A DNA stretch of 64,000 bases, from positions 744,001-808,000 of the forward strand of contig JAMWBK010000012.1 in the NCBI GenBank assembly GCA_029953675.1, given 5' to 3'. The notes below the pieces were generated by a model that was not told the origin of the DNA, did no database searches, and saw only the letters and a program-made list of their open reading frames with translations. Within the stretch, counting starts at the first letter, position 1. Each line of letters starts with the position of its first letter. This document shows positions 16,752-58,419 of this stretch, one piece after another. The position numbers and the translations under genes are program-made. The stretch is from Rhodosorus marinus CCMP1338. Taxonomy: Eukaryota; Plantae; Rhodophyta.

Positions 16752-17594
16752 TCATCGATTTGTACATGTAGCGTCCACCGGACGCAACCGTGGTGAACGC
16801 GACGACAAGCACCAGAGAATTCTTGACCATAGGCAGGTCCAGATCTGACAATAGTGGTTAGAGAACAGCATGTCACTATGAGTTCCTGCCGAGTCTTCCT
16901 CCGGACAGAGAAAAGGCAAACTCCTACCGTTATCTATCAGGTTGAGCATCGAGTACGCGGCTAAGACCAACTGCAAGCTCGTGTTCGCCTTGCTTATATA
17001 CTCCACTTTTATGGGCACTGGAGGTAGGTTTGTATCGAAGGCGTGACGAAGGCCTAAACCCCTCGAGCTGAGCTGCCTTCTCCTTAGCACGATCCATCCG
17101 CTCATGAGAAGCACGTCTCTTCCGATGATCATGCCGAAGAGCCATACGGGTATAACGGACTTCCAAGCCAGTCCAGTGAAAACTGATGACACGAGCACCT
17201 TGTCTGCCAGCGGGTCAAGAACGGCTCCGAGAGGGGTCTTCATATCATATTTCCGGGCGATGTAGCCGTCCAAATAGTCCGTGATCCCGAGCAAGACGAC
17301 ACCGGCAGTTGCTGCTTGTGGATAATCCGCCACGATCAAACATCCGAGCGCGGGGGCACACGCAATTCGCATTGAGCTCAACAAGTTCGGGACTCCAAAG
17401 TTGCTCTTCCCCTTAGACTTTGACGGAGTCGAATGTGAAGCACGCAAAAGTATCTGATTTCCCGAAATTTTACCCCGCTGACTGGCCTGGCTCAGTCGCG
17501 CCGCTCTCAAGCCGCCACGACCGACCCACCAAAGGCCGTTCCACTCCCATCTCCATCGCAGAACCGCACTGGGACGAAGCAAACCCACCTGCAT
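16752..17594 (-). CDS. CRD1: CDP-alcohol phosphatidyltransferase, most like cardiolipin synthase (CMP-forming); PGP synthase not excluded
   Basis: VPNLLSSMRI, TDYLDGYIARKYDMKTPLGAVLDPLADK (family signature), IIGRDVLL, ISKANTSLQL. Both termini approximate. Confidence 0.8.
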   Translation of the reverse strand: MQVGLLRPSAVLRWRWEWNGLWWVGRGGLRAARLSQASQRGKISGNQILLRASHSTPSKSKGKSNFGVPNLLSSMRIACAPALGCLIVADYPQAATAGVVLLGITDYLDGYIARKYDMKTPLGAVLDPLADKVLVSSVFTGLAWKSVIPVWLFGMIIGRDVLLMSGWIVLRRRQLSSRGLGLRHAFDTNLPPVPIKVEYISKANTSLQLVLAAYSMLNLIDNGRSLPFLCPEEDSAGTHSDMLFSNHYCQIWTCLWSRILWCLSSRSPRLRPVDATCTNR

Positions 17595-17774
17595 CTAAGC
17601 CAACGACCATAAGATCCTCAGAACTTGTTCAGTATCGAAACCTTGGAGATAACAAAATTCTTTTCAAATGTAGGTTGAACAAAGTCCCATTTGTCCTCTC
17701 CCAATATCTGCTCCGCTTCCTCTCCCCACTCCCTCCTCAAGCCATCTGTTTTCCATCCTCAAAACAATCACCAC

Positions 17775-17993
17775 TTTCAGGGTGATGTGAATAGCTGAGC
17801 TGGAAATAGCTAGTCACCCTGAAATCTACCCTTACTAAATCCTACGCTTACCAACCCATCGATTCAGGGTAGCGCTCTTCTTTTTGCAGAAAAGAGCTGT
17901 CACCCTGAAGTAGATTCCAAACTCTGGCTGTGCTAGGGTATTGCCTCAGGGTGACCTGACTTGCTGCATAGAAAATCAATAGTCACCCTGAGG
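17775..17993. promoter_or_regulatory. Array of three inverted-repeat pairs TCAGGGTGA-N27/28-TCACCCTGA in the divergent CRD1/RPA1 intergenic region
   Basis: Nonamers at 17777, 17814, 17864 (TCAGGGTAG variant), 17900, 17946 and 17983 in strictly alternating orientation. The structure is seen directly; the regulatory role is inferred from position. Confidence 0.6.
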
Positions 17994-18299
17994 ACGAGAT
18001 TTTTTCTTGTCGAGTATATCTTGTTGAGAGGGTGGGTGGCATGGCTCTTGAGCTGTTGGTGAAGAGGTTTCTATAGATTTGGAGATGAGTGTATGTCCTG
18101 ATCAGGTTAAGAGAGGAGCTAAGACTTTATATGGTTTCAAAGTAAGCGAAGAACCGTTTGTTGGATTCGGAAGGAAAGGCGGTATTTCTGCCTGTGGTTT
18201 CCTGGATGGACGAACTGATTTGATTCGTTTTTTTTTTCTTGTCTGCCTCTCTTGCAGATTGTTTTTAAGTTGTTTTGCTGGTATTTGAGGAATTTTTTA

Positions 18300-20415
18300 A
18301 TGGATCAATGGGATTCCAAGTTGACCAAGGAGGCGGTGAACAGGATGGTGTCTGGAGATACGAGCTTTCAGCCCGTGGTTCAGATCGCCGAGATGAGGAA
18401 GGTGCCGAACCAGAAGGGAAGCGATAGATGGCGGTGTCAGATTAGTGACGGAGGTCACAGTTGTGCGGCGATGTTAGCCTCACAACTGAATGAGCTCGTC
18501 AAGAACAATGAGCTGCAAAACCTCTCCATCGTTCAGCTCAAGGAGTTTATTGCCAATACCATTCAAGGAAGAAAGTAAGTAAGCGTTTTTGATATCCTCG
18601 CAACCGGAATTTTTTGTGATATTAGACCGTCTGGCAAAGGACGAAGAGAAGAGAACCTCACCGTTGGGACATTGTTACCTACAGGGTACTGGTCATCTTA
18701 AACCTTGAAGTTCGGAGTCCACCCCTTACACACAAGATCGGAAATCCACAAGATATCAATGGAAAAAGCGGCGTTCCCAAGCCGGATCCCTCTCTTCAAT
18801 CAGCCGCAGCGAGCCCGGGAGCATCTCCAGTAAGCGCTGGTAGCTCCGAGGTCAAGGGCAACGCGGCGGTCAAACGTGAGCCTTGGCGCTCTGGAGGAGG
18901 AAGCAGTGGTGCTATTCTTAGGGTTGGAGCGGAGCAGGTCAGTGGGAGCCAACACTTCTTCCCGATCATGACCATCAATCCGTATCAGAATCGATGGAGA
19001 ATCCGCGGGCGGGTGACCAACAAGGGAGCTCTTCGAAAGTACCAAAACGCAAGGGGCGAGGGCCAAGTCATGTCCTTTGAGATTGCCGATGACTCCGGAA
19101 GCATCAAGGTGGCTTGTTTCCAGGACATGGCCAAACAAATGTCCTCGAGGATCGTCATGGGGAAGACCTACACCATCGCCAAAGCGAATCTCAAGCAGGC
19201 CGACGCTCGATTCAACCAATGTACTTCGGAGTGGGAGATGATGCTCAACAACGACTCGGAAGTGGAGCCGTTTGAAGACGATGGAAGCATTGCCCAGATC
19301 AAATATAACTTTGTCACCATCGGTGGCCTTGCTACAATGGAGTCCGGCAGCTTCATAGATATCCTCGGGGTTGTTATTGAGGTTTGTGGTTTCCGTTTCT
19401 CCCTCGTGAACTCAGCGAATACGTTGGTGGACGCCAGCCTGCTGGCGTTGTTCGTGGCTGCTCCTGAGCTGTAGGAAGAGGACGGTGCCTTCGCTGACTT
19501 CGCTGACTTCGCTGCCCATCATGTGTTCAGGTTTCTGATATTGTAGAACTTACATCGAGAAGTACTGGAGATCTGCTACTGAAGCGGTCGGTTACGCTTA
19601 CGGATCGGTCTGAGAAATCCATTGCCTTGACGTTGTGGGGAGACCTTGCACAGAACTTGATTAGTTCGGCGGAGGGAAATCCAATCCTTCTCTGTAAAGG
19701 CGTCAAGCGGGGCGATTTCCAGGGCATTTCGTTGGATTCTCTGCGGTCATCGTTCTTCGAACTCAACCCAGCGATGGATGAAGCGTTTACGCTCAAGGGA
19801 TGGTACGACGCCACGGGTAAATCACTGAAAATAGAGTCGGTGAATAGTATGGCAGGTGGCGGTATCGGTTTGAACGATACCGAGCGGCTGACGATTAAGG
19901 AAGGGATTGAACTGAAGGAAAAAGACCAGGTGAATGATCCAAAGGGGATGGTGTTCACGATTAGGGCTGTGTTAGTGATGATCAAGAAGGATCGAGACCT
20001 CTGGTACCCGGCAGATCCAGAGACGAATAAGAAACTTGTACCGAGCTCCACAGGGAAGTGGAGGAACGAGGTGACGAGCAAGGAATACGACGATCCAAAC
20101 TACCGCTACGTACTTAACGTCAACGCCCAAGACCACACGGGTACGATGTGGCTCAGCTTCTTCGATGAGGCGGCGCAGACAATCATTGGTAAGTCCGCAA
20201 CGGAGATGAGCGATCTGCAGGAGTTCAGGGAGAATGAATACGAACGGCTGTTGGAGGCACCGCTTTTGAAGCCGTACGTCCTTCGAGTGCGGGCAAAGCA
20301 GGATACGTGGCAGGATGAAGTCCGGGTTAAGTATCAAGTTCTCAAGGCGAGTCCAGTGGACTTTGGGACGGAAAGCAGAGTAGTCATGGAAGAGATTGGA
20401 AAGCTCCATCAATAG
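18300..20415 (+). CDS. RPA1: Replication protein A 70 kDa subunit; multi-exon
   Basis: N-terminal OB domain (FQPVVQI..DRWRCQISDG..AMLASQLN), TINPYQNRWRIRGRVTNK, YNFVTI..IDILGVV, LTLWG..LKGWYD, RYVLNVNAQDHTG, FRVRAK-like C-terminus. Confidence 0.95.
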
Positions 20416-21060: not shown

Positions 21061-22458
21061 TCATTCCGAACGCGTCGCTGCACATATTCACAGAATACTA
21101 TCAACCACCGTAAAAACCGCGGAAGCAACTTGGGCGGGGTTTCCTGGAGTACTGGGTCAACAACAACTGTCCTATTGGGACGCAGCTTTGCGCGGTCGAA
21201 ACCCGTCCCAATGCATAACTTGTTAGCCGCACGATGCGAACAGGATGACCAAAACTGATCTCACCCTGAAGTCCAATTCCAGGATATTATTAACCAGTAT
21301 TCGGAACTGGGGTCTAGGTTGCAGAAGAGGCTACAGTACCTATGCTCCTTCCTTTCTCTACTGGGTCCCTACGAGGAGTTACGGACCAGCAGATTCAAAC
21401 CCTAGCTGCGAGCATGTGTGAGCTTCTGAAGCCGCTTGGTAGGCACCGGCAGTTGGTCGCGGAGCTCCGTCACCTACCACCTGGTTTTCCGTAGTCTTCG
21501 TTGTTGCTCTCTCGGTAGTGCTGCAGTCAGAGGACCTACTGGCCTCGCTCGCCGCCAACCTATTGGGGCCCTAGCGTACCTCATCCGGGATTTGGGGACC
21601 TCCCCGGAGATTCCTGATGCACAAGGAACTTTGATGTGTGTCAGGACATATCTAGAGGAGGATTTGAAAACCAAATTTGCACATCTGGACCTTAGAGAGC
21701 TCCCCGAGGGACTCTGATGTACAAATCATAACCCCTACCCTCCATACCGAAAACAGACTGAATTATCAATCAAAATTAACTATTTGGACTGAATTCCGTT
21801 GTGACGCTTGAAGCTTACTTCAAAGCGTGGCCAAACATCTGCTTGCATGTACATTGATGCGGCTCGGCTACCTGTCTGCTGGTTCTCGCCGTCAGGGTTC
21901 TGCAGCGAGTACCCTGCGGTAGGCATAAGGAATCATTGTACATGGACCTCATCAACAGCGCTGAGTTTTTCCCTTTTATGTTGCCAATCCCGCGCCTGGC
22001 TCCATGGTGGTTTTTTTTTTTTGTTTTCCTGCCGTTCTCTGTAGAGGGTCTTCGTCCTTGCTTGGCTTTCTGTTGTCCGTTTGACTGCCCTGATGCTCCT
22101 CCTCGACTGTATGCTTCTTTGAGTCTTGACTCTCTGGCGCGCTCTTTAGCGCCTTTCCCCCTGGGAGTAAGTCAGTCAGACCTTGGCCACCGATGAAAAC
22201 CGACGATATCTGCTGTCAAAAGAAGAAAACCTGGTGATATCCGATGAGGACCGGATACAAGCATTGGGGATGGGGGGGAGGGGCAATGGATTGACATCTC
22301 TTCCGAGAAGGTTTTCCTGCTGAGAATATTTGGTTACTTCGGAGCATTCTGCAGTCTGTATTCTCTGGAGAGGGTGAGCGAGGTGGTGGGTTGGGATTTG
22401 TAAACAAATAGGAAGTTTGGTTATTGGTTTTTTGTTTGGAAGAGTTTGAGGGGCTATT

Positions 22459-25059: not shown

Positions 25060-25420
25060 TTGGGCGGTGGCGACCGGGTACATGAGAAGATGTTGCTTAG
25101 CCAACGCAAGTATGTGATGATTATCGATAACATATTAGGTATCGATAACTCGCGATCGATGAGGACACTACCGCAGTGTCTGTGACAAGGAGCAAGACCG
25201 CAAAAGCTTGCGAAGCCCCCGCTGAATGAGCGTCCATACACCGGGAACTGGTGGGTAGTCTGATGTTGCTGGCAGCGAGGACGCGCCCGTATATATTTTT
25301 TGGTGTTCGGGTTCAACTGCAGCAACTACGGCTCGGAAGAATCGCAGAAGGCCAAGAGTGGGTTGAGATATTTATTGGGTACTCCGCGATGCAAGCTCAG
25401 CATAGGTGTTCGGACTTGGA
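25060..25420 (+). mobile_element. Ty1/Copia reverse-transcriptase relic (frameshifted)
   Basis: Consecutive motifs across frames: MLLSQRKYV, PY-RELVGSLMLLAARTRPYIFFGV and KAKSGLRYLLGT, matching the Copia RT consensus LSQ.KY, YRELVGSLMYL..TRPDI.FAV, AKRVLRYLKGT. Confidence 0.75.
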
Positions 25421-25589
25421 AAATATCTCAACACCCTCTTGACATCCATGCTGAGCTTGAATTGCCTAGCACCCCGTAGACATCTCGACCCAACGTACCT
25501 CAATCGGGGACGTTAGCCTCCTCAAATTCAGCGCATCCATCAATCGACGATTCCTATCCTTCTTCAGCACGTGGATTCTTCGTTAGCAC

Positions 25590-26609: not shown

Positions 26610-27050
26610 AGGGTTTGTGGGGGAGGTGGGGAGGTGGGGAGTGGGGGAGTTAGGGAGTTGGGGAGTTGGGGAATTGGAGAGTTTGTGGGGGAGGTGGGGA
26701 GGTGGGGAGCGGGGAGTTAGGGAGTTGGGGAGTTGGGGAATTGGAGAGTTTGTGGGGGAGTTGGGGAGGTGGGGAGGTGGGGAGTTGGAGAGCTGAGGGG
26801 AGTGGGGGAGTTGGGGAGTTGGGGAGTAGGAGAGTGGGGATGGTGTGGTTGGGTGAAGTTGGGAGGGAGATTTTGGAGCTGTGGGATTGTGGGGGTTAGG
26901 GAGGACTGTTGGTTGGGGTTGGAGTTGGGAGGGAGATCTTGGAGCTGTGGGATGGGGGGGGAGGGGGAGGTTTGGGAGGACTGTTGGTTAGGGTGAAGTT
27001 GGGAGGGAGAATTGAATCTGTGGGGATGGGGTGAGGTGTGGGCTGGGGGA
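26610..27050 (+). repeat. G-rich degenerate tandem array (GGGGAG[T/G]T-type units with a ~60-bp higher-order repeat); G-quadruplex-prone
   Basis: Dozens of GGG/GGGG tracts separated by 1-5 nt, directly upstream of the zinc-finger gene. Confidence 0.85.
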
Positions 27051-27089: not shown

Positions 27090-28427
27090 ATGGTTAGCCT
27101 GGATAAGAGTTCTAGGAGGTCATTATTTGGCTCGTATCCGTTGCCGGATGCGGTTGTTTCGTGGTTGACGTTTACTGATGAACGCGCCAATGAGAACGCG
27201 CACTGGCTGGATTCGTCTGTGGTTGTAACGAAGGGTATTGTGGAAACGAAAGGTGTGGTCCCGGGTCAAAGCCGGCCTCAGATATGGTTGGGGAGCAAGA
27301 GGTCGATGCTGATGATGTGCGAGTACGACTCCGAAGGTTTCTGTTTGGGCACCCTTACGAATGGGGATCACCCGCTCGTGGCGGCATTGATGGGAAACGA
27401 ACGGACCTCCCGCTTTGCATTAGTGGCAGACAAGGAGAACCTATCGTTCAGGTCAATGGTCTCTTGTAGTTATGATTCTGGTTACGTTTCGATGACATTT
27501 TACGAAGGCGTGCCAGGTCGGCAGAGCAACGTCGCAGCCGTATCTCAGCGGACTGCTGTGTTCAAGAAGGACACTCCACATATTATTGAGAAAGAAATTA
27601 GGGCTTTTGAACCCTGTGATGAACACAAACCTCGCGGGGGTTCATACTCCCATATACGTACGCCAAGCGCACTAGCGGATGGATCATGCTGGGAGAGGTT
27701 TCAGCTCATGGCTCCTGCACTCTTCAAGGGATGGAGGAATATATGCGTGGAAGTTGATAACTCTACGCAAGCGGGGGCATCACGTGTCCCAAGCAAGAGG
27801 AAAACGATGGATATGAGAGTATACAGCCGGGTTGTCCGTGATGAAGATGAACTTCGGGAGATCCGCAGAGATTTTGTGAACAAACTATTCGAACGAGCTT
27901 TGCGTCCGACGGTGACTCCAGCAGACGAGGCTTTGGTGTTTTCCACGCACGGGGAGCCACTAGCCCTTGAGTATTGGAGCTCCGTCGAATCAAGTTCGGG
28001 GTTGGATTCAGTACAGAAGGTGCCAACAACTCGATCCAAACAAGCTGGACCTCACACCTGCCATCAGTGCAACCACGATTTTAAGCGTATTTATGAACTA
28101 CATCGCCACATGGACAACGTTCACAACGGTGTTCGGAAGTTTTCGTGCAAGGTTTGCGGCAAGGCGTTCACTCAGTCTACACATGCGCGGGTGCACATGG
28201 AGACGGTTCACCAGAAGGTAATGTCGTGGTGCTGTGACCTATGTGGACGTGGGTTTGGAACAAAGCACAAGCTCGCGAGGCATCAAAAGTCTGTGCATGA
28301 GAAAGAGAGATCTCACGCTTGCTCAGTGTGTGGCGCGAGCTACTTTCAGAGTTCGGACTTGAGGCGGCATATGAAACAAAAACATGATGATGAACCAACA
28401 TCGACAACGGTCCCTGGCGTCGAATAG
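27090..28427 (+). CDS. C2H2 zinc-finger protein (4 C-terminal fingers) with an unrecognised ~330-aa N-terminal region; intronless
   Basis: CHQC..LHRHMDNVH, CKVCGKAF..HMETVH, CDLCGRGF..HQKSVH, CSVCGASY..HMKQKH. Confidence 0.9.
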   Translation: MVSLDKSSRRSLFGSYPLPDAVVSWLTFTDERANENAHWLDSSVVVTKGIVETKGVVPGQSRPQIWLGSKRSMLMMCEYDSEGFCLGTLTNGDHPLVAALMGNERTSRFALVADKENLSFRSMVSCSYDSGYVSMTFYEGVPGRQSNVAAVSQRTAVFKKDTPHIIEKEIRAFEPCDEHKPRGGSYSHIRTPSALADGSCWERFQLMAPALFKGWRNICVEVDNSTQAGASRVPSKRKTMDMRVYSRVVRDEDELREIRRDFVNKLFERALRPTVTPADEALVFSTHGEPLALEYWSSVESSSGLDSVQKVPTTRSKQAGPHTCHQCNHDFKRIYELHRHMDNVHNGVRKFSCKVCGKAFTQSTHARVHMETVHQKVMSWCCDLCGRGFGTKHKLARHQKSVHEKERSHACSVCGASYFQSSDLRRHMKQKHDDEPTSTTVPGVE

Positions 28428-29501: not shown

Positions 29502-30290
29502 TTAGTGAAGCCTCTGAGGCTCTCCGTAGAAGAAGTCGTCCATGACAACGATCTCGCAGCCGTGACACTTCTTGTCGTTGATCTTACCGTTTCCGAGCTT
29601 GACGCTTACACGCGCAATGATGGGCTCATGGAAGTAGAATCCGAGGAAGGAAAGTCCCTTGGGGCTGGCCTCAACGTAAGACTGGGCGATAATGCAGTCG
29701 TCAGCATCGTAAGCGATCATCTCAGTGACGTTCTCGAGGTCGACTCCAACGAAGACGGCTCCGAATCCCTTGACAGCGGCCCTGGTGTTCTTGCCGGGGA
29801 CGGTGAACTTGATCCAGAATTCGTTGTCCTTGATTGGAGTGAACAGCCGCTTCTCACTGAACGCAACGAAGGTCTTGGATTCAGCGTGGTTGAGGGTCGA
29901 GAACTTTCTGTCCTTGATAGTGTTCGGCTTCGGGTTGCTGACGCGGAATTGGTTTTGCTTGCTGAACAAGTTCAATCCGCGCGTGACGGTTTCATCGAAG
30001 AAATCCTTGGGCATCTCGAACGGAACGATCGGGGCGTCCCAGTTGACGCTTCGCTGCCCGGACGGGAAAGGTCCCGGGTTGCTTCCATTGTCTTCTCCAC
30101 CCAAAAGTCCCTTGAAGTGGTCCACAGACGTGCTCAACCACTCGGGACACTCACCAGCCCCGTGAACGATGGTCTTAAAAATCGGCTTTTCAAAATGGGG
30201 ATTCTTGCACACAAACTTCCTGGCGGAGGTCTGCCCTGCCATCATCACCACCGCCATAGCGGCAATCAGTGCAATCGTGCTGATCTTCAT
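29502..30290 (-). CDS. Secreted protein of an uncharacterised family resembling bacterial exported (PEP-CTERM-associated type) proteins; intronless
   Basis: Signal peptide MKISTIALIAAMAVVMMAG; motifs LGGEDNGSNPGPFPSGQRSVNWDA, FSEKRLFTP, FTVPG..AAVKGFGAVFVGVD, LSFLG, VVMDDFFYGEPQ; strong codon bias. Confidence 0.85.
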   Translation of the reverse strand: MKISTIALIAAMAVVMMAGQTSARKFVCKNPHFEKPIFKTIVHGAGECPEWLSTSVDHFKGLLGGEDNGSNPGPFPSGQRSVNWDAPIVPFEMPKDFFDETVTRGLNLFSKQNQFRVSNPKPNTIKDRKFSTLNHAESKTFVAFSEKRLFTPIKDNEFWIKFTVPGKNTRAAVKGFGAVFVGVDLENVTEMIAYDADDCIIAQSYVEASPKGLSFLGFYFHEPIIARVSVKLGNGKINDKKCHGCEIVVMDDFFYGEPQRLH

Positions 30291-32823
30291 GGCCCTTACT
30301 TGTTTTGTCTTTTTTGCGTATTTGTCGCTGTAATAATCTCTCTCTTTTTCTCTCTCTCTCTTTGTCTCTTTGCTTGCTTGGTCCGTTCTCGATCTCCTCA
30401 CGATTCAGACGTTCCAGGTCTTCCTCTTATAGTGTTCGAAGGCACTCTGATAGTCTCCGCACGCCCATGGAGCTGAACCAAAGCAGCCTACGCCCCTGAC
30501 AATCAGAGCTCTCCCATTTGAAAAGTGCGTTTAGCACCATGCTGACTGTCGTTTAGAATGGAAGAGCGAACACAAGAAATTTCAGTGTTGCTGTCTCCGC
30601 AGGTGTGCAATACCAGACGCAAGGGTCAGTACCGCCCGGCATCCCTTGCCCCCTTCCAGGAACCGAGCCAGGCGCAGAGGTCAGAGAAAAAATTGAGTAC
30701 AAAACATGCCGGTCTAGAACCGCTGCTCAGATTCGAGAAACTTCTTCACAGCTTGGCTCAAAATTGGCCTCCTCAACAGCTGCGCAATCCCTTGGCTGAG
30801 TCAGGAGCTTGTTACGAGCACGGCACAAAACGCAATAGGCCCGACGGTGAACTGAACAACTCGTGAACCGGATTTTTTTGGCTGGTTTGGTGGTGATTTG
30901 ACTTAGGCTTTCGTCAACTTCAACTTCACCACAGGCGGCCGCTCATTTTCGGTCCACTGTCGATTAGCCTACTTCTTCGCCTACCTCCCTCGAATTTTTC
31001 ATTTCAAAGAACTCTTAATTCACTGAATGTGCTGCCTACGACGGCCTGTCAGCCGCCTTTAGAAGGAGCATTCCCCCACTTGATTCAAAGGCAACAACAT
31101 CCGGGAAAAATAGGAAAATTCTACAAACAAGGAGGAAGTCGCCCCACTTCGGGACTGAGCCAAACGAAGCTCAACAATGTCGACCCGACAGCCCACCCGC
31201 ACCAACCAGCCAAACCCAGGGACCCCGCACGTCATCAGGAATTAAGACGATTCCCTTTTTTGCAATCCCTTTTCGTTCGATGCTGATTCCCGTAAAATAT
31301 TTCCTAAACGTGACCACCCGTCCGCGGGATACTCGGGTGAAGATCCTAAAGGGTGACAACACGTCTCGAAACACAACTCGGGTGAAGAACCTGCTTTGCC
31401 CGCGTTCTTAACCCTTCCACCTAGCCCCTCTCCAGATGCCCACCACCCTCCAACTGGGGAAAGCCTTGGCCTTTGACTCAGATCAGAAACCAAAAGGGCG
31501 GTCCTCCCCATTGCTTTCAGAAAACGGCTTGCCCTTTAATATAAGAAATAAAACCGATGATCCGCATGCGAGGCTATTAATTGGACAAACACATCCTGAA
31601 TTGTTTCTTACTTTGATCAAGAGTTAAGTTCAGTCAATTTTATTTTGACTGACTGTGATGGGGGATGGGTTGGGACGTATTTGGGTTATCAACGACGAGC
31701 TTTGCCTTGAGGGATGCTCCTTTTTTTCCTTTTTGTTTTGTTTGGCATAGTGGCGGGCGCTGGTTCCATCAGCGACTGAGCGACACAAACCCTCGTCCTC
31801 GCGCCGTGGCACACACGTGTTCAGTACATGGCGCGAAAAAATCGTCCTTTGCTATGTTCGAATTATTTTCGAAAAACGGTAAACGAGCTGCCTGAGGACA
31901 AAGGAGCCGGTTCTTCGAGTCGAAGACTCCCTGGTTGCACCACTCGATTCTGATGCTCCAACATAAGTGCTCTCCATTCTTGCTGCCGGACCGTCGATGG
32001 CAGCGGAGCTCTCGTGGCAACTCAGAAATTCCCTAATCTGAGTGTCCTTGTAGCCTAACGCAGTCCGACCTGGACCATGCCTAAGAACGGTTGTGGATAC
32101 TGAGACAAAACCAATACCAACTGACGTCCATTCGCTTGGCGAGGAAACAGCCTTTAGATGGGCCTGAGTTTCTCCACTATACAATACGATCGCCATGTCA
32201 GAGAGAGTCAGATCGAAATCCGCAGTAATCTCAACAAACTCGCGTGTTGTCGTAGTGGAACTCGTTTATCATCATCGTGACGTCCGTCGTGGGGGGTATT
32301 AGTTGGAGTGCTTCCACCATCTAGTGGACATTCTGTGACGGCGGCGTGTCGTCACCACTCTTCGCTGGACTACTCGCGACTCCAAGCTAGACTGTGAGGC
32401 TAAACATTGGTAAACCGCAACCTAACCTGGCTCAGTATCTAGCTTTGCCCAAAACGGAACTATTGGCGCTTCACATGGTTGTTGAACGCCGTCGTATTGC
32501 TCAGCGAGGACGTTGAATGCGTTTTCAGATTGCAACCAAGTTCACTCAAATCTCGAGGTTTATGCTCCGGTCTTCTCAGAAAAAAAGATTTGCTCGGATC
32601 TGAGCATGTCGAAAAGATGGCAAAATTTCAAAGACGTGCCCCGATGTCCTCCTTGCCGATCTTCTCGGTAGAAGTCCGTTTTCACTGTCTTTCATAACTG
32701 TTGGTTGTACGAGTACAATTTCACTCCTCACTAACCTCAAGAGGCAGTATGTATGGTGGCAATAGGGCACGCCCTATCGCCCCATGCATATTTCGGTACT
32801 AATTTCAACGGTTTTGCCCTAAA

Positions 32824-43315: not shown

Positions 43316-43500
43316 AATTTCGTAAGTTATTTTTATTTTTAACGGAAATGCGGTAAGAAATTCCAATTACCTACCGATGGGACAACAATGTTAGAAACCG
43401 GGGATCCGCGAGCAGACTGTCCGGCAAAGGGTGCTACCCGAAGTCCGAGTAGTGATAGTGGTGGTTTTACTAACATATCCTTAGGCGGCACGTAGGGTGT

Positions 43501-43718
43501 AATGCGAACTGGAGACCGTTTACTTCAAGCTACTGATATGTAGGGCTGGAGGTCCGCAAGAAATGTAAATTGAGCTAGGCTAAGGAGACCCAAGGGCGGG
43601 TATGATACTAATGCGAACTGGAGACCATTTACTTCAAGCTACTGATATGTAGGGCTGGAGGTCCGCAAGAAATGTAAATTGAGCTAGGCTAAGGAGACCC
43701 AAGGGCGGGTATGATACT
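43501..43718. repeat. Near-perfect 109-bp tandem duplication (43501-43609, 43610-43718)
   Basis: One mismatch seen (CCGTTT vs CCATTT). Confidence 0.95.
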
Positions 43719-44339
43719 ACGTGGTCATCGACCAGCCAAGTTAGTTGAAAGAGTTCTGGCGGGGCTCTCGAGAGAAGATCCCGTTGGACAGAAAATCGTT
43801 TATAGAAAAGTCGGGGCGTCTTCCAATAAAGTCGCACAATTGGATGGTGCAGGAGTACGGGGTCATTGCATATCAGACAGCGATGGTAGGCGGCGAATCG
43901 GGGTGACATTCCAGGTTGGCTAAAACGACAGAATGAGTACGCTTTTATCCCGCTCGGCGTCGAACTCTTTGGGTTTATTGACAGTGCTTCAGCCTTCTGG
44001 CTGAGTGAATGATTTGAGGATCAACTTGATCAATTCTCATGCTTCCGATCTCTTCTTATTTTACTCGGAGCACAGTCGCCCTCATCCTTGATGCTCGTTC
44101 CTTAGGTCGAGCGTAGTTCTCCCTTCTCGAAAGGAGTTTTGAACGGCTGACCTCCCCTGCCTGGGTTTCCTGCAGGAGCCCTGCTCCTAGAGGATCTTCG
44201 AGGACAGTACGCTCATTGAACCTTTTATAAGAGCATCTCCGATTCCAGCTAGAGGTGAACAAGGCAGAGTATATGCCGTTATGCAAAGACAGACCGGTCT
44301 AACTTGAACAAAAAGGTCCCTGAATGAAAGTACTCTCGG

Positions 44340-48388: not shown

Positions 48389-48631
48389 ACTAGAGAACAT
48401 GGCGGTGGACAAGGACGCTGGCCATTTGTCTTACAGCTGATCCTAGCTGCAATGCGTTTCTAGCAAAACAGGAGCGGCTCAGCGGCGCTATATCCCCCGA
48501 ATCAGACGCTTACTAGAGAACATGGCGGTGGACATGGACGCTGGCCATTTGTCTTACAGCTGATCCTAGCTGCAATGCGTTTCTAGCAAAACAGGAGCGG
48601 CTCAGCGGCGCTATATCCCCCGAATCAGACG
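48389..48631. repeat. Near-perfect 120-bp tandem duplication (48389-48508, 48512-48631)
   Basis: Copies identical except one A/T change; 3-bp spacer CTT. Confidence 0.95.
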
Positions 48632-49339: not shown

Positions 49340-50550
49340 GAAACCTCCCCACACTAAGTCCATACACGGTCTCCAGCCAGCGCCCAAGGCGCTGGCTATC
49401 GGACAAGAATGAACTGAGTTGTTGTAGTTTTGGCAGATGTAAGAGCACCTAACGCAACCCATACCCTCCCCATCACCCAAGCCCATCAGATAGAACCTGC
49501 GAAAACCCGAAGTCCATCCCGCCCCACCAGCGGCGTCTTCGGTGTGGACTGAGTTGTGGCTATTCGGGAAGCCTTAAGAGCACCCTTACCCCGACTTTAT
49601 TATTGGTTCCATGAACCATCCCCGAAGAAAAAGAAAAACCAACAGCGTTGGTCCATCCTCCCACTCTCCCGCCCGGCGTTTCAGCACTAGCTATCGGAGT
49701 ACGGAGGACTCAGCTGTGGATACTAGGGGAAGTTTGAGAGCCCGATTACCCAACTGCACCCCATAAACCCGTAAACTCTCCCAATCAACCTCCGCAAACC
49801 TCAGTCCATCCTTCCTCTCTCCCACCCACGCCTTCGGCGCTGGCTATCGGATTACGATGGACTCAGCTGTGGCTATCGAGCGATGCTTAGGGTTACAATT
49901 ACCCAACACTACCCCATAAAACCACCCCCGCAAAACCTGCCACCCCCAAAGTCCACCCTCCCGCTCTCCCACCCCGGCGCTGGCTATCGGAGTACGATAG
50001 ACTCAGTTATGGCTATTTTTCGACGCTTAAGATTGCCATTACCCAACACTACCCGATAAAACCTTCTCCAAAACCTCAGCCCAACCTCCCCCACTCCCAC
50101 CCGGCGCCTTCAGCGCGGGTTAACGAAGTCCGATCGACCCAGCTGTGGCTATTTGTCAACGCTTAAGATGCTACCATTACCCAAACAGTGTTGGATAATC
50201 CTAAAAATTTTATGGGGTAGTCCCCATCAAAACTCCCCCAAACCCCCAAGTCCAACCTCGCGCGCACTCCCACCCGGCCGCAGCCCTTCAGCGCGGGCTA
50301 TCGGCATCCGATCGACCCAGCTGTGGCTTATTTGTCGACCCTCAAGATTGCTATCCAATACTCAAATAGTGTTGGATAATCCTGATTCGTGGGGTAGTAC
50401 CCATAAAAACTCCCCCAAAACCCCAAGTCCAACCTCGCGCGCACTCCCACCCGCCCCAGCCCTTCACGCGCGGGCTCTCGGAGCACGATGCACTCAGCTC
50501 CGGCTATTTGTCGACCCTCAAGATCTCTTAACCATTACCAAACACTAGTT
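49340..50550. repeat. Degenerate satellite-like array, 8 units of ~135-180 bp
   Basis: Anchor GAC(T/C)CAGCTGTGGCTAT-like at ~49412, 49547, 49707, 49860, 50000, 50136, 50314 and 50491; C-rich top strand; no consistent ORF. Confidence 0.85.
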
Positions 50551-53086: not shown

Positions 53087-54228
53087 CATTTTGCCTGCCT
53101 GTGTGTACAAAGTCGGATCGCTCGGCATGCCCCCCCTGCCAGGGCGATGCTGGTCAAGCAGGATCAGAGTGAAGAAGACGCAAGTTTGTATAACTGAAGC
53201 TGCGTGTTATAAGATAGATAAGTAGGACTGCTTGTATGTAAAGAAATCGCTGTTAGTTTTGTTGTTGCTGGAGGGTAGTGTAGGCTATCTGGGTCAAGGT
53301 GGATTCTCAAGCTCAGGAGAGCTTAGGACGTGCTGGCTCTGGCGCTGGGAGAGACGGGAGGGATAGTCCCCTCTGACAAAAGGTCGTTTTGCGATTCGAG
53401 CCTTGCCCCCATGGAAGCGATAGTGCTATCGTCTCTGTGAACCAGCTGACCCAACTCAAAAGTTTTGTAAAGCGATCCGAACATTCAGTTCGTGCTCGTG
53501 CCCTCGCGGGCGGGGTGCCGGTATGTCATCGACGTACTGGACAGCCTGATGCGCCAGTTTTGTCTACTGTATGTTGACATTAGACTGATACATTTCAAGC
53601 CCCCGCGAGCCCAGCAAGAGGTGGATGTGGGGAGAATAGCAGGACGCTTGAAGGGGCATAGACCGGCACAAAATGGTCTCCTTGTGTACGAACAAAGGGG
53701 TAGTTCGGTAAGTAAAGACTCTGAGACTGTCGGTGGTAGAGTAACGCTAAAGAGACAACCAGCTTTTGCTGGTTCACAGAGGCGTTTTAGCTTTGAAGGT
53801 CGATCGGGCCAGTGCAGGTGAGATCTAGTCACACCGGCCGCCACGGACTGGCCAAAGGCGCATGAATTGGGAAGATTTTGAGAACCAGAAGTCATTGCTA
53901 CAACCTCACATCGCTCAGACTGCCATTCCCAAGGCATCCACCAACCCCAAACCCCAAACCTAAACAGTGCCCTTCTACCGTTCCATAATATATGCACCAA
54001 TGCTACTAGGTCAACGTACTACTATTGATAAAAATTACATTTATTAACCATTTCTAGGAACTCACAAACTGAATCCAATGCTCTTCGCTGTACTATTGCT
54101 ATTATTTTTGATCGTGTGTATGTCATGGTGTTTCTAGGGTGGGTAGTGTGCATAAATTTCGGAACGGTTGGAATACTTCCCGCGAACACGATGAGATGGG
54201 CTTGGATCGGTTTATTGATCCATAGCAA

Positions 54229-55976: not shown

Positions 55977-57308
55977 CTAAAACTCTGCCTCCAACGAAAA
56001 CACCTGCGCGGTCCTCTCGCTTGTCACCCCAGCCTTCTGGTACTCGCCCACTCTCTTCTCGAAAAAGTTGGTCTTGCCCTCCAGGGAGATCATCTCCATC
56101 CAGTCGAACGGATTCGTTGAGTTAAAAAGCTTACGATAGCCCAGCGCGACCAAAAGCCGGTCCGCAACAAACTCGATGTACTGGCTCATGAGCTTGTTGT
56201 TCATCCCGATCAGGTCAACCGGCAGGGACTCGCACACAAATTGTTTCTCACACTTCACGGCGTCGATAAAGATCTGCAAACCACATGAAAAGGAGTGGAT
56301 TAGCTTCTTCCCGTCAAAAATTGGAAGTGCCAGCGTGTCGCTTACGTCGTGAATCCTAGACTCTGCGATTCTGTCCTCCTGAGGAACCATGCTGTAAAGC
56401 AGACACGCGAAATCACAGTGCAAACCCTCATCACGAGCGATGAGTTCGTTGGAGAATGTCAGACCAGGCATGAGCCCACGCTTCTTAAGCCAAAAGATCG
56501 CACAGAAGGATCCACTGAAGAAGATCCCTTCCACGGCAGCGAACGCAACTATCCGTTCGAGGAAAGAGTCGCTCGAGTCAATCCACTGGATTGCCCAGTT
56601 CGCCTTCTTCTTGATGCATTCGACCTAACCAATGAAACACGGATCTATGGTAAGCGCGCCAAGTTCAAGCCAGACTGCAGACGAGCCATCTAGAAAATGT
56701 ACTGACCTCCTCCATCGCGCGGAAAAGGCGCGTTTTCTCTTCTGGGTCCTTTATGTAAGTATCAATCAGCAGAGAATATGTCTCAGAATGAATGTTCTCC
56801 ATCATCATCTGGAACCCATAGAAACAGCGTGCCTCCGGGAGTTCAACTTCAGTGGCAAAGTGCTGGGCAAGGTTCTCCAGGACAATTCCATCAGAAGCGG
56901 AGAAAAATGCTAGAACGTTGGAGACAAAATGCTTCTCCCCGGGGTTGAGGCTCTCCCAGTGGGCGATATCTCCCTCCAGGTCAATTTCCTCAGCGGTCCA
57001 GAACGACGCCTACAGGTATAGATAATCAACCGCACAGGTCAGAACCCAAATGGACGCGCGGACGCGTCCAATTACGAAGTGGATCCATCCTAAAATACCT
57101 CATGCTTTTTGTACATATCCCAAATCGGTTTGTGCTTAATCGGGAACAGGGTGTACCTCTCCGAATTCTCCGCCTTGAAAATCTCCGGAACCCTGACAAT
57201 TCTCTTCGTTTCCTCAACAACATCATCCTTCCCGTCGCTCATGTTTTCATCACTCATTTTCTCCAGATCGTGACCTTTAGTCAACAGAATATCAACCGGC
57301 GGTGCCAT
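55977..57308 (-). CDS. RNR2: Ribonucleoside-diphosphate reductase small (R2) subunit; multi-exon
   Basis: [90 protein letters not shown]. Confidence 0.97.
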
Positions 57309-58419
57309 CTCCGTAGCTCAGACAAAAACCAACCAAAAGACAAAAACACAAAAAAACACCAAACTAACAAGGTCGGGACAGAAATTGAGAGAGAAACAGA
57401 GAAAAAAAAAGGGCCAGGGTCCTCTACCACTCAGCCTTGAATCGGTTCTACCTTGCTTAATAGTCGAACCTTTCCTAATCTCCCAAAAACTCTCCCTCCT
57501 CCCCTCCTCCCAACAAAAAGTATCCTTAATCCTCACCTCCCTCCCTTCCCACACCCAACTCAACTCCTTCGCTCCTTTTAAGTACTCAAAACTCTTTTGC
57601 TCCGACCCGGCGAATGTTACCACCCAAAAACCCGAAAAAAATTCCTCCCGTAACAATGGCTTCCCTCACTTTTTGGCCAACAAAAAACTACCTAAAAACT
57701 TATACAAGACCAGACCTGTTCTAATGCTATCTTCGTTTGGCACAAGAAAAACAGGACAAGATTTCCGGGCCAGAAAATTATTACACAACCAATGTTCTCT
57801 CAGGGAGAGATATGTATGTTGTTCTACATCCAATTAAACTTCTTCCCGGTGATATCTACAACCAATCAAAGTTTCTTATCTGGTTCGTCCAATATTTTTG
57901 GCGGTTTACACCCTATTACGGATCTCACCCTTTCCCGGATTAATCTTACCTTTTTCTGTTGTATTTTAGACCATCGACAAACGCGGGAATTTATATCCCT
58001 CGTTACTTCTTCTGAATTCAATAAAACGTGCTGGTCGCGAGGGAGAGTAGATTTTTAATTGCTGGTTTATTGTCACCAAGCCTCGTGGTCAGGATGAAGT
58101 TGTAGTTATGTAAAATAGTTTAATTAACAACTATTTTGGACGGGAGTGATGGTGACGTATAGATTCGTTGTTGCGGTCGTTATTGGAAATATCGATCCGG
58201 AAGCGGGAACATGATGACTGATGGAGAGCTTCTCTGGATAGGTTTGTGAAAGACAGACTGTGCGAAATGGAAGAGTGAGGTGGGCCTTCGTGCATCCCAG
58301 TCAGTTCTGGAAGAAGACTGTGTGTGTGGCAGCTGGATGTTGCATCCATTGCACTTAGCCTAGTACTGTTTCCTTGAGGGTTCACAGGGGTTGTGTACCC
58401 TGTGGATTGAGAGTTGGGG

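Follow-up and report, generated by a model that had tools for sequence, protein, structure and literature searches.

What kind of element occupies the intergenic region between the divergent genes for replication protein A large subunit (RPA1) and a CDP-alcohol phosphatidyltransferase in the red alga Rhodosorus marinus CCMP1338? The question is raised by a motif array at positions 17775-17993 of the 64,000-nucleotide stretch of contig JAMWBK010000012.1 analysed here (the window; contig position = window position w + 744,000), corresponding to contig positions 761,775-761,993 of assembly GCA_029953675.1 (17 contigs), in which six copies of one nonamer form three inverted pairs. Palindromic sites repeated and clustered in a promoter are a familiar kind of feature; whatever role this array plays is putative. 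Judging from sequence features, we tentatively prefer to see in it a promoter-embedded homotypic cluster of three bipartite putative protein-binding sites, similar to an upstream activating sequence (UAS), a reading that we place a little short of an even chance.

Both direct reading and pattern searches recover five exact nonamers and a degenerate one in strictly alternating orientation, as a preliminary description of this DNA had reported. The exact nonamer TCAGGGTGA lies on the + strand at 17777 and 17946, its complement TCACCCTGA at 17814, 17900 and 17983, and the degenerate copy TCAGGGTAG at 17864-17872. These sites pair into three inverted units, with 28, 27 and 28 nt between the nonamers of units 1, 2 and 3, and the features of the array and its downstream edge are as follows.

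17775-17785, + strand: left arm of unit 1, TTTCAGGGTGA, with its nonamer at 17777-17785.
17786-17813, no strand: spacer of unit 1, 28 nt, whose self-pairing TAGCT/AGCTA is not significant.
17814-17824, - strand: right arm of unit 1, TCACCCTGAAA, equal to TTTCAGGGTGA on the - strand.
17825-17862, no strand: linker 1, with the weak core CTACCCTTA at 17826-17834; unrelated to linker 2.
17863-17872, + strand: left arm of unit 2, the degenerate TTCAGGGTAG, agreeing with the nonamer at 7/9 positions.
17873-17899, no strand: spacer of unit 2, 27 nt, self-complementary (GCTCTT.../...AAGAGC).
17899-17909, - strand: right arm of unit 2, GTCACCCTGAA, as delimited by the repeat finder.
17910-17943, no strand: linker 2, with the weak core CTAGGGTAT at 17932-17940.
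17944-17955, + strand: left arm of unit 3, CCTCAGGGTGAC, as delimited by the repeat finder.
17956-17981, no strand: spacer of unit 3, 28 nt when counted between nonamers, with self-pairing on the + strand that is not significant.
17982-17993, - strand: right arm of unit 3, GTCACCCTGAGG, as delimited by the repeat finder.
18000-18033, + strand: downstream flank, with a T6 run at 18000-18005 and a putative TATA-like GTATATC at about 18013-18019, as judged from its letters.

By the repeat finder, pair 1 forms a perfect inverted repeat of 11 bp (17775-17785 / 17814-17824) and pair 3 one of 12 bp (17944-17955 / 17982-17993), in agreement with the preliminary description. Written in a single orientation, the six sites read TTTCAGGGTGATG, TTTCAGGGTGACT, ATTCAGGGTAGCG, CTTCAGGGTGACA, CCTCAGGGTGACC and CCTCAGGGTGACT, and the extended consensus common to all of them is YYTCAGGGTGAC. 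The repeated module can thus be written as YYTCAGGGTGAC - 26-28 bp - GTCACCCTGARR, spanning 46-50 nt and occurring three times in one orientation (as a relaxed search pattern, TCAGGGT-N26-32-GTCACCCTGA). Site centres lie 36-37 bp apart inside pairs and 82-87 bp apart between like-oriented sites, and the linkers measure 41 and 37 nt between nonamers. Within linker 1, a 16-nt unit is repeated 1.9 times at 17822-17851 (AAATCTACCCTTACT / AAATCCTACGCTTAC), with an extra ACCCT core in its first copy.

Such an accumulation is far above what base composition delivers. The window holds 6 exact nonamers, a number that 100 dinucleotide shuffles (0.60 +/- 0.65) never attained, and the paired form CAGGGT-N20-36-ACCCTG is found 3 times against 0.04 expected by chance; nonamers with one mismatch occur at chance rate (21 vs 16.9). 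The sole further exact copy in the window is the one already noticed at 21261: this solo TCACCCTGA (21261-21269) has a 7/9 inverted partner, ACAGGATGA, 10 nt upstream (together 21242..21269), lies in an unannotated 2-kb stretch between RPA1 and a DCN1-like gene, is of marginal significance, and is of uncertain relation to the array.

The three units are related to one another beyond their arms. The preliminary description had called the spacers unrelated, which is wrong: in register, spacers 1 and 3 share 16/28 bases (binomial P=4e-4) and spacers 1 and 2 share 13/27 (P=0.01), with a non-significant 10/27 between spacers 2 and 3, and only the linkers are unrelated, linker 1 and linker 2 giving no alignment and random identity. 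Across their full 46 nt the repeat finder puts units 1 and 3 at 74% identity, and with a covariance model built on the unit the + strand reaches 57-67 bits versus 18-34 for the - strand. Identity among the 30-nt flanks of each unit is at or near chance (4-12 of 30). Because the units are similar while their flanks and linkers are unrelated, what has been repeated is the inverted-repeat module of 46-50 nt, and not an 85-bp tandem period.

Within this module, conservation is unevenly distributed. Among these paralogous copies, the units of one array, units 1 and 3 are identical at 18/18 arm positions, 16/28 spacer positions and 13/60 flank positions (Fisher P=8e-4 for arms vs spacer and P=1e-9 for arms vs flanks), and 18 unchanged arm bases would be expected with P ~4e-5 had the arms diverged at the rate of the spacer. 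Spacer length is likewise kept (28/27/28) while the linkers differ. By this comparison the arms are held by selection or by some homogenising process, and the constraint is on their sequence, beyond mere complementarity: 7/12 stem pairs are without any variation across the three units, and the covariation score of the stems is equalled by 43/500 shuffles. Arms that are identical across units rather than covarying suggest sequence-specific recognition.

A second line of evidence comes from cores that lie outside the pairs. Nine AGGGT/ACCCT cores occur in 17779-18033, eight of them within 220 bp, against a maximum of 3 per 220 bp elsewhere in the window. Three are found outside arms and hairpins, namely those of the linkers (CTACCCTTA and CTAGGGTAT) and one downstream of the array (AGAGGGTGG, 18026-18034); chance would give the linkers 0.13 such cores rather than two (P=0.008, post hoc). 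Clusters of transcription-factor sites typically show such a mixture of strong and weak sites, and weak cores beyond the hairpins are predicted by neither an RNA nor a mobile-element model.

The inverted repeats nevertheless invite structural explanations, which the folding of the units both feeds and restrains. Unit 2 had been described as an extended imperfect hairpin, and this holds: the self-complementarity of its spacer exceeds that of shuffled versions (p=0.03 for the + strand, 0.0005 for the - strand), yielding a hairpin of ~19 bp with a 4-nt loop, a near-complete 47-nt palindrome. The spacers of units 1 and 3 are no more self-complementary than shuffled ones (p 0.2-0.3), and since only the unit 2 spacer folds significantly, a hairpin beyond the arms is not common to the units. 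As RNA, the units fold at -21.7, -23.1 and -26.2 kcal/mol (z -4.1 to -5.5), and the fold of the whole array (246 nt, z -5.2) retains three local hairpins.

These folds are what speaks for a structured RNA, by which we mean a + strand transcript, whether a long RPA1 5' leader or a distinct non-coding RNA made upstream, with three stem-loops that would be recognised by a protein or by the translation or decay machinery. The two outer stem pairs change on both sides, from TT/AA in unit 1 to CC/GG in unit 3 (U-A to C-G in the transcript), G.U wobbles number 4 on the + strand versus 1 on the - strand, a CT-rich tract lies upstream (17690-17770), and the T6 run follows hairpin 3 at a distance of 6 nt. 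The change of the outer pairs is, however, equally well described as covariation or as a preference for pyrimidines at both of the positions 5' of the site, seen in each of its six copies. The stem sequence is otherwise invariant, with covariation that shuffles match as noted above, and the fold energies show no consistent strand preference, the - strand being better for units 2 and 3. Searches gave no relevant Rfam match at E<=10 and none at gathering score, and no tRNA by ARAGORN. If they stood in a 5' untranslated region (UTR), three hairpins that all reach -20 kcal/mol or beyond would block scanning ribosomes on the message of an essential gene, the interiors of units 1 and 3 fold like shuffled sequence, and the AGGGT cores beyond the hairpins are left unexplained. 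We therefore regard a structured RNA as unlikely, at roughly one chance in seven.

Particular RNA classes fare no better. A cluster of microRNA-like hairpins was rejected because the stems (continuous over 12 bp, and ~19-22 bp at most when interrupted, in unit 2 only) fall short of the ~21 bp needed for a small-RNA duplex and, at 12-19 bp, below the length of Dicer-type precursors. Box C/D or H/ACA small nucleolar RNAs were set aside for the absence of their boxes from units 2 and 3, a C-box-like GUGAUGU being present in unit 1 only, and a tRNA-like or Pol III gene because the A-box-like TAGCTGAGCTGG is confined to unit 1 and a B box is absent. The string YYTCAG|GGTGAC resembles fused splice sites, as in an introner or splice-site element, but a GT...AG frame is found in no unit.

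Folding also bears on a second structural possibility, a cruciform element that would extrude under negative supercoiling between the divergent genes, there to absorb or sense supercoils or to recruit structure-specific proteins. The perfect arms of 11 and 12 bp, like the unit 2 palindrome, form DNA hairpins that are stable (-11.4 to -13.3 kcal/mol, z -3.8 to -5.0), the AT-rich spacers have a common GAAA tract, and the position between divergent genes suits the twin-supercoil-domain model, which is established knowledge. By the usual standard of long perfect arms and a centre of <10 nt, unit 2 approximately fits with its 4-nt loop, but the centres of units 1 and 3 span 26-28 nt, and unpaired spacers of that length disfavour extrusion. 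A structural role would moreover allow arms to covary, whereas their sequence is fixed, and the extra non-palindromic AGGGT cores suggest sequence read-out. A cruciform element is accordingly improbable in our estimation, clearly more so than a structured RNA, and both of these alternatives, which the preliminary description had listed, gain little; an origin-like role, listed there beside the cruciform, is speculative.

Could the array instead be palindromic DNA without host function? Selfish or accidental origins of this sort would include a small palindromic mobile element without target-site duplication (TSD) inserted three times, a decayed local amplification homogenised by gene conversion, or a nuclear copy of mitochondrial DNA (NUMT), here of non-coding minicircle sequence. 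Conserved arms around a variable interior make up the pattern of terminal inverted repeats, a mark of miniature inverted-repeat transposable elements (MITEs) that the arms of 9-12 bp indeed provide, and the arm start CAGGG resembles many hAT ends. Intergenic DNA of the window is also prone to local duplication, with near-perfect tandem pairs (99% identity) of 109-bp units at 43500-43719 and of 123-bp units at 48389-48631, and an older array of 140-177-bp units in ~3 copies (49788-50524), so that the R. marinus genome seems prone to short local duplications. That genome comprises 31.19 Mb with 8392 genes, 24,821 introns and 15% repeats, mostly long interspersed nuclear elements (PMC10250338); it contains a few hAT fragments and 6757 copies of unclassified repeats, NUMTs are abundant, and the constant regions of the 13 mitochondrial minicircles carry tandem repeats (PMC10250338).

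On the other side, no TSD was found at any plausible element boundary tried, the flanks of the units extending the palindrome (TT/AA, CC/GG) without any direct repeat, and the covariance model run with filters off found no further unit copy in the 64 kb. As to DNA transposons, the genome is left with 35 hAT fragments (0.03% of it), and Tc1, Harbinger, CACTA, MULE and Helitron elements are absent from it (PMC10250338). The earlier judgement that TSDs are missing and a simple MITE unlikely is upheld on these three grounds. Three independent, evenly spaced insertions in the same orientation within 220 bp are themselves unlikely; simple tandem duplication would give homologous linkers, but the linkers are random and Tandem Repeats Finder calls no array of period ~85. 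A tandem repeat or minisatellite was rejected on the same linker identity, which leaves no homology over the full period, and Helitron and Spy-type elements, which lack TSDs, were rejected for mismatching flanks. The array has a GC fraction of 0.47, against minicircles described as high-GC, and the genome paper with its supplements holds no string that matches the array (PMC10250338). Gene conversion in a palindrome, finally, keeps arms complementary within a unit, not identical between units. Palindromic DNA of this kind thus seems to us a doubtful explanation, at about one chance in five, though the strongest of the competitors.

Relatives outside the window were sought by pattern, in metagenomes, prokaryotic genomes and viral contigs, and by neighbouring genes. 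In metagenomes the strict unit pattern had 0 matches; a loose one gave >120 single matches, mostly bacterial and chance-like with dissimilar spacers, and a two-unit pattern gave 6 bacterial matches (REP-like palindromes or chance) and 0 viral ones. The bacterial REP-like palindromes hold GCTCAGGGTGAC / (G)CTCAGGGTGAC, are longer, bear no relation to the algal array, and were recovered only because the search pattern demanded the motif; REP-like palindromes and tandem 13- and 19-nt repeats are seen in the bacterial metagenome and MAG contigs L019 (2147-2235, 3606-3710, 5120-5215), L122 and L127. In the literature, strings equal to the nonamer or the 10-mer turned up solely as primers and in unrelated sequences. 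The homologues that protein searches yielded were distant (51-52% identity) and sat on short contigs: the search with the 262-aa C-terminal exon of RPA1 gave a single relative (51% identity), carried by a Logan contig of 3.4 kb without promoter or motif, and missed the annotated 618-aa R. marinus RPA1 although other window proteins (P0002 and P0009) were recovered, an apparent index gap. Exact-product look-ups for the phosphatidyltransferase and RPE65 open reading frames (ORFs) gave no match, and a homolog search with a 672-aa lineage-specific protein of the window gave no paralogs. The carotenoid-oxygenase ORF of the window is 100% identical to the R. marinus hypothetical protein NDN08_004938, and a diverged Rhodosorus strain stands at ~86% protein identity. 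A bacterial promoter and terminator scan is inapplicable to this eukaryotic host.

The gene context places the array between divergent genes, as had been proposed. NCBI gene calls on the same contig give a divergent intergenic region of 705 bp between coding sequence (CDS) starts at 17594 (-) and 18300 (+); the array keeps a distance of 180-400 bp to the first of these starts and of 310-525 bp to the second.

16752-17594, - strand: first coding exon of the CDP-alcohol phosphatidyltransferase, of cardiolipin/phosphatidylglycerophosphate-synthase type, with its CDS start at 17594.
18300-20415, + strand: RPA1, encoding the 618-aa large subunit of replication protein A and interrupted by introns at 18575-18684 and 19382-19530.

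The RPA1 call carries the domains Rep-A_N, REPA_OB_2 and Rep_fac-A_C, and splicing with the two introns reproduces its 618-aa product length. The phosphatidyltransferase (CDP-OH_P_transf) has an Arg-rich N-terminal extension or presequence, and its top NCBIfam match is cardiolipin synthase ClsA at 87.5 bits, under the cut-off of 240 bits, with pgsA second; the label CRD1 previously attached to it is thus plausible and unproven. A 5'UTR intron may lie downstream of the array, from GTATGT near 18092 to CAG near 18258. A minimal start-stop ORF, ATGTGA, occurs inside unit 1 (17784-17789) and longer upstream ORFs begin at ~18041 and ~18085, which would be relevant only to an RPA1 transcript that begins 5' of the array.

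Promoter regions of other proliferation-linked genes in the window offer a comparison. No E2F or MluI cell-cycle box (MCB) site (TTTSSCGS or ACGCG) occurs in 17595-18299, the region between the two CDS starts. Five E2F-like TTSSCGS sites (including TTTGGCGG, TTTCCCGG and TTCCCGC) lie upstream of the ribonucleotide reductase (RNR) small-subunit gene at 57843-58203, and a palindromic E2F-like TTCCCGCGAA lies upstream of HAT1 at 54177-54186. The lack of an E2F-like site in the RPA1 intergenic region leaves room for a different input, and the array, if regulatory, would be an input distinct from the E2F-like one on the RNR small subunit and HAT1. Within the apparent first intron of the RNR small-subunit gene, GGACGCGCGGACGCGTCC at 57052-57069 contains repeated GGACGCG, including ACGCGT.

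Taken with the arm constraint, the extra cores and the divergent setting, these observations make a cluster of operator-like binding sites, the first of the readings in the preliminary description, the one that we favour; the constraint on arm sequence exceeds what base-pairing needs. We infer protein binding, the oligomeric state of the factor, the gene regulated and the direction of effect, whereas the sequence itself shows how the array is built, how far it exceeds chance, how unevenly it is conserved and which genes flank it. One bipartite module may have been copied locally to three copies of the same orientation within the 705-bp region, after which the 9-10-bp arms and the distance between them would have been kept constant, the spacers would have drifted to ~50% identity and the linkers to random, and weak AGGGT cores would have arisen between the modules. 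A putative sequence-specific factor would read TCAGGGTGA(C) on double-stranded DNA, each inverted pair taking up a dimer or a larger oligomer, and with three such pairs one flanking gene or both could come under cooperative control of a switch-like kind.

Several properties of the array sit uneasily with such binding sites. The 36-37 bp between inverted half-sites is far above that of classical dimeric eukaryotic sites and sets the two sites on opposite faces of the helix. Binding to duplex DNA needs neither the complementarity that reaches into the unit-specific flanks (TT/AA, CC/GG) nor the almost full hairpin of unit 2, and conserved arms with variable interiors are also expected of the terminal repeats of mobile elements. 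In addition, the nonamer is absent upstream of the RNR small-subunit and HAT1 genes, which would be the obvious candidates for co-regulation in the window.

Comparison with known systems helps to locate the proposed site cluster among familiar arrangements. The divergent yeast genes GAL1 and GAL10 share a UAS with four palindromic Gal4 sites (CGG-N11-CCG), a family to which the array does not belong but which it resembles in architecture; both there and here, inverted-repeat sites are grouped within ~120-220 bp of a shared divergent promoter, with conserved half-sites, fixed spacer length and free spacer sequence. The array differs in its half-sites of 9-10 bp (3 bp for Gal4) and spacers of 27-28 bp (11 bp for Gal4), and in its red-algal host, with a putative reader in place of a known Zn2Cys6 or other factor. 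Telomeric-type Myb sites form a second comparison, including the TRF1 half-site YTAGGGTTR, the plant telo-box and fungal Tbf1 palindromes; TRF1 dimers reportedly tolerate widely spaced, inverted half-sites, and telo-boxes occur in promoters of proliferation genes. The array nonamer shares with the TRF1 half-site its length of 9 bp, its AGGGT core and 7/9 positions, but two core positions differ (C for T and G for T), and the similarity is not significant given the many motifs compared. Bacterial interspersed mosaic element (BIME) and repetitive extragenic palindromic (REP) arrays likewise consist of short palindromic units in strict alternation with short linkers in intergenic DNA; unlike the algal array, they are prokaryotic, number hundreds of copies and are linked to RAYT transposases. 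MITEs and the subterminal transposase-binding repeats of hAT and CACTA elements resemble the array in that inverted repeats bound a short variable interior and in a 9-10-bp motif present in both orientations within ~200 bp, whereas the array lacks a TSD, a transposon body and other copies in 64 kb.

Candidate readers of the nonamer can be named only loosely. A telobox-type Myb protein, suggested by the AGGGT core and the 7/9 agreement with the TRF1 half-site, is a lead rather than evidence. The same holds for the nearby 445-aa 4-finger C2H2 protein encoded at 27090-28427, whose presumed recognition code GCA-GGT-nGA-GnG compares with TCA-GGG-TGA-C at ~P=0.04 after allowing for alignment choices, and which we take to be a curiosity. 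RFX X-box, T-box, GLI/KLF and nuclear-receptor half-sites were dismissed as poor matches. Less probable than any explanation above, and offered as speculation, is that the modules are a dual sensor of structure and sequence, in which negative supercoiling or replication stress between the divergent genes would extrude the arms and an oligomeric factor or RPA would read the TCAGGGTGA stems. RPA might in that case act through the exposed single-stranded spacers and tune the output of RPA1, an autoregulatory DNA-structure switch to which we give a very slight chance; to our knowledge, no such switch for the main single-strand-binding protein has been described in eukaryotes.

Elsewhere in the window, other repeats and reading frames deserve mention. 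At 26613-27031, ~26 copies of G-rich GGGGAGTT-type octamers with higher-order periods of 66-86 bp abut the start of the 4-finger C2H2 gene (CDS from 27090). Two perfect 12-bp inverted repeats, GTTGAGATATTT/AAATATCTCAAC and CAAGCTCAGCAT/ATGCTGAGCTTG, are interleaved as A-B-A'-B' with gaps of 15-18 nt at 25362-25459, in unannotated DNA between the DCN1-like and C2H2 genes; their topology is pseudoknot-like, and by a rough estimate ~0.2 inverted repeats of 12 bp are expected per window. On the - strand at 29502-30401, a 299-aa ORF encodes a plausible secreted protein without Pfam match that is absent from the NCBI gene calls, and a 326-aa ORF overlaps it on the opposite strand.

What the array means depends on which explanation holds. 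If it is a scattered repeat or a NUMT, it would be ordinary genome debris that chances to sit in a promoter. The cis-regulatory logic of red algae is almost unknown and the R. marinus genome is recent (PMC10250338); if pairs of YYTCAGGGTGAC mark a coherent set of promoters, the array would define a new red-algal regulon, its unusually long and widely spaced bipartite site would provide a bait for the factor, and the module would be a compact candidate element for promoters used in red-algal transformation.

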